Shown piece after piece: positions 11,835-12,746 of a stretch of 64,000 nucleotides of DNA. Position numbers and translations under genes: made by a program. The notes under the pieces are model-generated. The model saw nothing but the letters and a program-made list of their open reading frames with translations, searched no databases and was not told the origin of the DNA. The DNA comes from Podarcis gaigeae (lineage: Eukaryota). How positions within the stretch are numbered: the first letter of the stretch is position 1; every line of letters begins with the position of its first letter. The DNA is taken from assembly GCA_964106915.2 (NCBI GenBank), contig OZ066914.1; one strand, 5' to 3'.

Positions 11835-12347
11835 AGAGAAAGAGAGAGGGAGAAAGCAGGAGACGGATGGGTCAAGCTCCCCTGCCTTTCCCGGGGTGTT
11901 GGTGAACTCTGGGGCTTCTCTGTGTGGGAGGCGAGGGAGGGGAAGCCGAGCAGACTGCGGGAGGGAGCTGGGACACCCAGCTGCAGGGAGACCAGGAACT
12001 GTTACACTGCTGCATACATTAATGACTGCTCAGTGTGCCGGGGAAATACTCCTTGGCGGTTGGTACATGTGTGTAAACAGTCTTCTCTCTCTTCCCTCCC
12101 TGCCTGGATACGCTGTCCTCCCTCTCCTCTGCTCCTCTTTTCCTCCCCAATTGTGTACTGCCCTATCCTCTGCCTTAATCCTCTTCTTCCCCCTCTTCTT
12201 CTTCTTCCCTTCTGATTCCTGCATCCTTGCACTCTCTGTTTTTCTCCCACCTCTTTCTCCTTCCTGATCCTCCCTGCCTGCCTGCCTGCCTCCTTCCTCC
12301 CCGTCTTTCTCAGGGGATCACACTTTGCCGGGATATAGTTGTGTAAA

Positions 12348-12746
12348 CTGGGGGCTGCCACCACGGAGAGACCACAGGAACCCCCCTTGGGCCCTCCATG
12401 TCCCTTTGACGGGGCCTTTTGGACTCGAAGACCCCCCCACGCCCCACAGCAGGGGTGCTTTGCTTGCATCTCCAAGACGCCCCCTGCACAGCAAGGATCG
12501 CCGGTCCTGTCTCCTTCTTCTGCCGTTTGCCTCATGGAGAACAAGAGCTGCAAAGGGGACAGCCTGCGGCCACCTGTCCAATGCAAACACTCTGTAGAGA
12601 AGAAGACGATGACTAACCCCACCACGGTGATTGAAATCTACCCAGACACCACCGAGGTGAATGATTACTATCTCTGGTCCATCTTCAACTTTGTATACCT
12701 CAATTTCTGCTGTCTGGGATTCATTGCCTTGGCATATTCTCTGAAA
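12348..12746 (+). CDS. IFITM10: IFITM10 first coding exon (CD225 domain N-half). First in-frame ATG is at 12534; proposed CUG start at 12348; exon acceptor at 12313/12314
   Basis: Translates ...[71 protein letters not shown], then AAA|gtaagt (phase 0). A long polypyrimidine tract precedes ctcag| at 12313. Gene identity is firm; the start position is inferred. Confidence 0.93.

Follow-up and report, generated by a model that had tools for sequence, protein, structure and literature searches.

The IFITM10 gene carried on the + strand of a 64,000-nucleotide stretch of genomic DNA from the squamate Podarcis gaigeae (contig OZ066914.1; the whole stretch is called the window below) probably specifies, besides its AUG-initiated product, an N-terminally extended protein that starts at a non-AUG codon. 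Upstream of the first in-frame AUG of the main coding exon, a further 56-62 residues of IFITM10 are protein-coding and under strong purifying selection across sauropsids, and the squamate transcripts seen cannot make them from an AUG. Taken together, a coding extension, a reading frame closed on its 5' side by a TAG and transcripts lacking an in-frame AUG make non-AUG initiation the best reading, and we estimate the probability that a long IFITM10 isoform is translated from a non-AUG codon at roughly 0.6. IFITM10 has been called the best conserved of the IFITM proteins and the one least well understood, and the lizard, chicken and marsupial genes have been treated as two-exon genes for proteins of 120-130 aa (PMC3424830).

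Gene structure and the in-frame TAG

The gene in the window has two coding exons. The features on which the argument is built are the following (a slash marks a splice junction):

12294..12313, + strand: polypyrimidine tract and strong 3' splice site (cag/G); pyrimidine fraction 0.95 over the 20 nt before the AG.
12314..12746, + strand: main IFITM10 coding exon, which holds part of the leader, the N-terminal extension and the start of the CD225 domain.
12336..12338, + strand: in-frame TAG closing the IFITM10 frame, downstream of acceptor 12313; it ends the in-frame upstream open reading frames (uORFs) from ATG 10370 and ATG 10523.
12348..12350, + strand: CUG, candidate start 1 (tgtaaaCTGg; A at −3, G at +4), from the sequence and genome comparison.
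12357..12366, + strand: gccaccACGg (ACG at 12363-12365), candidate start 2, in optimal Kozak context and conserved across amniotes.
12366..12533, + strand: Pro/Cys-rich conserved N-terminal extension (...GCFACISK...AVCL), 56 codons, delimited by the ratio of nonsynonymous to synonymous substitution rates (dN/dS) and the codon-position pattern.
12534..12536, + strand: first in-frame AUG (ctcATGg), start of the 120-aa form and also the start annotated in amphibians.
35818..35967, + strand: last coding exon, with the C-terminus YPLTNY, plus the stop codon (tblastn; coding 35818-35964, stop at 35965).

The main exon is entered through the acceptor ...tctttctcag/G at 12313 (sequence context ...ccccgtctttctcag/G), the strength of which had been remarked upon in the initial annotation of this DNA, and is left through the donor AAA/gtaagt at 12747. 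When the translation of this single exon was used as the query in a homology search, the closest homologues were the IFITM10 proteins of Varanus, snakes and Gekko, with 91-96% identity over 100% of the query, extension included. Residues 108-136 of the translated exon match the CD225 domain (Pfam PF04505; E = 8e-7; score 29.5 bits, cut-off 27.1), which runs on into the last exon. A phase-0 intron after ...AYSLK separates the two coding exons, and their junction is present in an RNA contig. Because the last coding exon is 35818-35964, the AUG form amounts to 71+49 = 120 aa, the length previously supposed, and a CUG form would have 182 aa; a start at ACG 12363 would give 177 aa.

Read in the IFITM10 frame from the exon start, the codons are GGA TCA CAC TTT GCC GGG ATA TAG (12336) TTG TGT AAA CTG (12348) GGG GCT GCC ACC ACG (12363) GAG ... 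ATG (12534). Positions 12339-12533 form 65 open codons, there is no ATG between TAG 12336 and 12534, and CTG 12348 stands 62 codons before ATG 12534. The initial annotation had described a frame open for 65 codons above the AUG and closed by a TAG downstream of the acceptor, and all of its coordinates were confirmed. It had also left room for the TAG being an assembly error. This is ruled out by RNA contigs from two related organisms (runs X4 and X10, from two studies), which span 12314-12748 with the TAG included and differ only at 12446 and 12449, and by three other squamate genomes.

For comparison with the window, the orthologous exon was taken from nine other genomes. The TAG is kept in four of the five squamate genomes (the window, Paroedura, Gekko and Pseudonaja), and a viper-like snake contig, L006, has TAC instead. 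Outside squamates, Alligator has CAG at the equivalent position, Pelodiscus CCG and Corapipo GAG. In non-viperid squamate species represented by models only, the protein models break before L-[CGI]-[KQH]-L-G, which fits a TAG that would span most squamates.

Coding signature of the N-terminal extension

A codon alignment of 8 sauropsids was made, and dN/dS was obtained from Nei-Gojobori counts (pN/pS, the corresponding ratio of proportions, is given for one segment). The values, with the variable sites by codon position, were as follows:

7 codons before the TAG: dN/dS 0.86 in squamates, 0.77 in all 8; variable sites (squamates) 5/1/3.
8 codons from the TAG to the ACG: pN/pS 2.6 in squamates, dN/dS about 1 in all 8; variable sites 3/2/1.
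56 codons, 12366-12533: dN/dS 0.08 in squamates, 0.19 in all 8; variable sites 5/5/26 (chi-square p = 5e-6).
Segment after ATG 12534: dN/dS 0.04 in squamates, 0.03 in all 8; variable sites 5/4/30.

It is apparent, first, that no coding constraint exists in the 7 codons 5' of the TAG. Secondly, the 56 codons upstream of the AUG show a coding signature comparable with that of many bona fide coding sequences. The pattern of substitution in the extension is of the coding type, and the extension is therefore translated in the lineages that carry the TAG, as had been proposed; it is as conserved in L006, with its TAC, as in the TAG carriers. Thirdly, the coding signature sets in at codon 12363 or very close to it. 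From the TAG to the ACG, 5 nonsynonymous substitution events and 1 synonymous event were counted, against about 10 and 26 in the extension (Fisher p = 0.016). The initial annotation had asked whether the coding signal starts at the CTG; the codons between the TAG and the ACG show no such signal.

The +1 frame of the main exon is also open, for 90 codons (12325-12597), and a Gekko kuhli protein, P0021 (UNVERIFIED_CONTAM), uses this frame and later shifts back; the codon-position pattern places the selection on the IFITM10 frame and not on the +1 frame. Within the extension lies an out-of-frame ATG (ccctccATGt) that opens a three-codon ORF (MSL, then stop; 12398-12406). It is dictated by the Pro-Cys codons CCA TGT and stands on the path of ribosomes scanning to AUG 12534.

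Candidate start codons

Three near-cognate codons are found in frame between the TAG and the conserved part: TTG 12339, in a poor context (atatagTTGt), CTG 12348 and ACG 12363. As judged from their conservation, the ACG is our slight favourite, tentatively held, ahead of the CUG, and both may be used. The ACG is present in 9/10 amniote genomes, and all ten have a purine at −3 (ACC, ATC or GCC) and G at +4. The third bases of the GCC, NNC and ACG codons are invariant in the 8 sauropsids, while elsewhere 10/36 four-fold sites and 0/5 CpG sites are invariant. Across amniote proteins, similarity starts at Thr-Thr-Glu/Asp, and not at the Leu-Gly from which it had been thought to begin. The ACG is a conserved near-cognate that stands in good context where the coding signature begins on its 5' side; the CUG answers to this description in squamates alone, and there its context is sometimes lost. 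Both CTG and ACC-ACG-G are retained in dolphin.

In the earlier proposal translation of the long form starts mainly at CUG 12348, the product is a 182-aa isoform whose extension measures 62 aa, and a downstream fold assists initiation there. The CUG is the most efficient near-cognate start codon. A ribosome that scans the leader would encounter it first. In the window its −3 base is A and its +4 base G, and the CTG is kept in 5/5 squamate genomes as well as in dolphin; the Leu-Gly that it begins is invariant in 20 squamate proteins, with Leu-Arg in one Logan sequence. However, the −3 base is C in Pseudonaja textilis (CAA CTG), and Gln and His at that protein position imply the same in two Anolis. 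The codon itself is TTG in Pelodiscus, TTC in Alligator and GCC in Corapipo, and Leu-Gly is missing from marsupial, tuatara, crocodilian and bird proteins and deleted in the mouse lemur model. Nonsynonymous changes occur in the codons that lie between the CTG and the ACG, and the GC-rich sequence after the CTG, which had been expected to fold, has no excess structure (minimum free energy −31.2 kcal/mol against −32.5 ± 3.2 for shuffles; z = 0.39). What stands of the initial annotation is that a non-AUG start explains the data best; the CUG is not its sole candidate and may not be its best one, and we regard initiation mainly at the CUG as doubtful.

Transcripts reaching the main exon

Two leaders were recognized from RNA contigs:

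10177..10551, + strand: non-coding first exon (5' leader), lying in a CpG island, donor AG/GTAAGT; its 5' limit is approximate.
11766..12313, + strand: leader of an alternative, unspliced-entry transcript (X4 record 23), continuous with the genome into the main exon.

Exon 1 is supported by X4 record 20 (10177-10328) and by X10 record 5 (10374-10552, followed by 15 extra letters); the GC fraction is 0.62-0.63 across 10000-11600. In X10 record 8 (707 nt) the match begins precisely at 12314, preceded by 29 other letters, and acceptor 12313 is used. X4 record 23 (2051 nt, depth 28.5) follows the genome without a break over 11766-12748 and passes straight through acceptor 12313, its positions 397 to 526 corresponding to 12177 to 12306. 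It departs from the exon at 12746/12748, where its loose end is identical to 35820-35849 in the last exon. Because the depth further upstream is only 2-6, the dominant mRNA in the X4 sample seems to start near 11770, and an internal promoter upstream of the main exon probably drives it. A like organization is suggested for mammals, alligator and turtle, where models read out of the polypyrimidine tract.

The spliced leader (10170-10551 + 12314-12600) contains five exon-1 AUGs. Two of these, at 10370 and 10523, are in the IFITM10 frame and open uORFs of 68 and 17 codons, both of which stop at TAG 12336; the AUG at 10509 opens a 108-codon +1-frame ORF that runs to 12595 and so overlaps AUG 12534, and the remaining two give short uORFs. 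In the long-leader form, the upstream AUGs at 11786, 11867, 12022 and 12067 are all out of frame and ended by 12265. Neither form seen in the X4 and X10 contigs, which can miss rare forms, thus supplies an in-frame AUG to the extension, in agreement with the initial annotation, which had held that none could be supplied through acceptor 12313. The TAG may act as the shared stop of the in-frame upstream ORFs. Exon 1 joined to an alternative acceptor, at 12339 or 12378, was considered as a source of an AUG and rejected: the frame is then open and contains no ATG.

An ordinary AUG might nevertheless be brought in from an upstream exon spliced to the AG at 12338, by which the TAG would be removed with the intron. 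A workable ORF of this kind exists, from ATG 10829 in a candidate exon that ends at 10972 in phase 0, with the donor gtgagt at 10973. Of the squamate genomes 4/5 retain the AG of the TAG, about 15 non-viperid squamate models (Gnomon and Ensembl) take exactly this junction, and Corapipo uses another downstream acceptor here together with an AUG exon homologous to 10900-10972. Against this, the junction from that exon to AG 12338 or AG 12377, named beforehand as a possible refutation of the non-AUG start, was not found: within the limit just given, no X4 or X10 contig starts at 12339 or 12378, and those seen begin at 12314 or run on through the site. As an acceptor AG 12338 is weak, its tract being 55% pyrimidine (45% at AG 12377), and it sits 25 nt past an acceptor with 95%. 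Exon 1, the sole upstream exon supported by RNA, lacks an ATG in the frame compatible with 12339, and no conserved AUG-bearing coding exon is found among the models, the upstream parts of which are unrelated between species, as when programs seek any ATG. Finally, L006 has lost the AG and its extension is equally conserved. An upstream AUG, the main rival to a non-AUG start, seems an unlikely source of the extension.

Annotated N-termini of IFITM10

The database models themselves were informative. Some 20 IFITM10 proteins annotated in squamates bear N-termini that are unrelated to one another and join the common sequence just before L-[CGI]-[KQH]-L-G; these come from Varanus (two different ones), Elgaria, Sceloporus, two Anolis, Podarcis, Eublepharis, Gekko, colubrids, elapids and Candoia. 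The viper models read through the site with Tyr. Some of the annotated N-termini map to separate parts of the CpG island (10161-10247, 10624-10686, about 10900-10972 and about 11307), and many database models of IFITM10 begin at MENK. Such disparity suggests that the squamate N-termini are gene-prediction artefacts forced through the AG of the TAG. Since prediction programs behave in this way when a coding block has no AUG, the unrelated N-termini lend indirect support to a non-AUG start. Bird and mammalian models disagree among themselves as the squamate ones do: mammalian models start with MREGKRG..., MLQGSRVG..., MCLPRLL... or MRAGSEP..., and birds show two forms.

Parts of the upstream region resemble annotated N-termini of other species. 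The frame at 10900-10972, which gives ...GKEEEPEAVLSWRRSNSPSPSL ahead of the gtgagt donor at 10973, has its homologue in the exon that opens the coding sequence of bird IFITM10 isoform X1 (...EEAEPEAVLSRICSDSPHPSL); the lizard frame has no ATG over 10900-10972 and, joined to 12314, hits the TAG. At 11009-11060, ATGGATGGA... resembles the start of bird isoform X2, MDGQTG, but a TAG closes the frame after 7 codons. At 11307-11363, ATG AGG ACT CAG CAA AAT (MRTQQN...) agrees with the N-terminus given for Eublepharis IFITM10 (MRTQQNTEQE...). This ORF of the window is closed by a TGA after 18 codons and has no GT donor ahead of that stop, and the stretch is probably a conserved leader element or uORF rather than coding sequence.

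Other features of the window

The C-terminus YPLTNY (35950-35967) reads YPLTDY in the other squamate, turtle, crocodilian, bird and eutherian IFITM10 proteins compared, with LSDY in two strepsirrhine primates and LNDY in marsupials; amphibians diverge further. A fragment of a high-copy interspersed repeat lies at 9192-9245, where word depth is very high in all contig runs (to about 42,000, in X15) and many loose ends occur on either side.

Discussion

We propose the following scheme for IFITM10 in this squamate. The mRNA would reach the main exon in two ways, from exon 1 via acceptor 12313 or from an internal promoter upstream of the exon. Exon 12314-12746 would begin as untranslated leader, TAG included, followed by an extension of 56-62 codons without an AUG. 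In both forms of the mRNA, each in-frame upstream AUG would be terminated at the TAG. A scanning ribosome could then start at a near-cognate codon within the 27 nt that separate the TAG from the point where constraint sets in, giving the long isoform, and ribosomes that bypass the near-cognates would start at AUG 12534 to give the 120-aa form. We infer from the sequence both the initiation at one of these codons and the leaky-scanning link between the isoforms.

Several observations weigh against this scheme. The RNA evidence comes from contigs assembled in two small runs (X4 and X10), a process in which rare variants are dropped; a bulk raw-read RNA run, X24, placed 9 reads in the window and none on the gene, and so gave no junction counts. 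The junction 10551-12314 is deduced from the match ends of X10 record 5 and X10 record 8 and not from one joined contig, and some annotated upstream junctions may have RNA support not visible here. ATG 10829 is in frame with AG 12338, and conservation of the AG of the TAG in non-viperid squamates is also compatible with a role as a splice site. As to the choice of codon, tinamou has GCG in place of the ACG. The separation of CUG from ACG depends on 8 codons, and among the 20 squamate proteins the variability before and after the ACG (4/7 versus 15/56 positions) did not differ significantly (p = 0.18). Constraint is often relaxed in N-terminal tails, so its weakness ahead of the ACG is no proof that this part is untranslated.

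Two further explanations account poorly for the data. It is very improbable that the extension is untranslated in this lizard, with only the 120-aa form made and the conservation reflecting an RNA- or DNA-level element; the published length of 120-130 aa for lizard, chicken and marsupial proteins and the many models starting at MENK agree with it, but a 5/5/26 periodicity and a dN/dS of 0.08 in lineages with the TAG cannot be produced by a non-coding element, and there is no excess RNA structure. Low-frequency readthrough of the TAG from exon-1 AUG 10370 or 10523 in the 10551-12314 transcript is more improbable still: the two AUGs are in frame via acceptor 12313 and end at the TAG, and L006 has a sense codon, TAC, at that site, but the sequence 5' of the TAG is unconstrained (dN/dS 0.86; variable sites 5/1/3), the base after the stop is U (UAG-U is not, to our knowledge, a high-readthrough context), and the dominant transcript of the X4 sample has no exon 1.

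The preferred explanation, initiation at a near-cognate codon, may reach beyond squamates. Mammalian long IFITM10 proteins (228 aa in gibbon, 221-232 aa in others) carry, like the lizard protein, a Pro/Cys-rich extension upstream of the MESK/MENK methionine, with about 60% identity to the lizard exon. Unlike the lizard gene, their models start at annotated AUGs, in upstream exons or in a retained intron, that differ between orders. Amphibian IFITM10 (134-141 aa) has the CD225 core as in the lizard and a MENK/MDNK start homologous to ATG 12534, but no extension is annotated. Because the amphibian proteins start at this methionine, the extension looks amniote-specific. The present analysis raises the possibility that one conserved ACG serves all amniotes as the start of the functional long isoform. 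On this speculative proposal, which we think improbable as a whole, the same gccaccACGg would start long IFITM10 in mammals too, the lineage-specific 5' exons with an AUG that are annotated in reptiles, birds and mammals would be untranslated leaders or annotation artefacts, and the squamate TAG would be a conserved insulator stop, ending in-frame uORFs just before the true start.

N-terminal differences change sorting or modification in other IFITM proteins, and the extension could alter the sorting or modification of IFITM10. Because the conserved stop narrows the start to 27 nt, the gene is also a clean natural test case for non-AUG initiation. The kind of mechanism is already known; what is new is its proposal for IFITM10. 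No link between IFITM10 and non-AUG initiation was found in the paper texts searched or in the supplements of PMC11317171 and PMC6886504 (the supplements of PMC3105428 were outside the search). IFITM10 is named once in a supplementary gene table of PMC9789052, an entry likewise outside the search.

Conserved N-terminal extensions initiated at non-AUG codons are a described class in vertebrates (Ivanov et al. 2011, PMC3105428), with CUG-initiated PTEN-alpha and the neuronal pentraxin receptor as examples. IFITM10 shares with this class an open frame above the annotated AUG without an in-frame AUG, conservation of the coding type, a near-cognate codon with strong Kozak context where that conservation begins at its 5' end, and a shorter AUG form made by leaky scanning, which for IFITM10 is predicted. 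It differs from the class in that initiation is here a prediction, in that two candidate codons stand 15 nt apart, and in that a lineage-wide in-frame stop, only 9-24 nt upstream, delimits the interval in which the start would lie.

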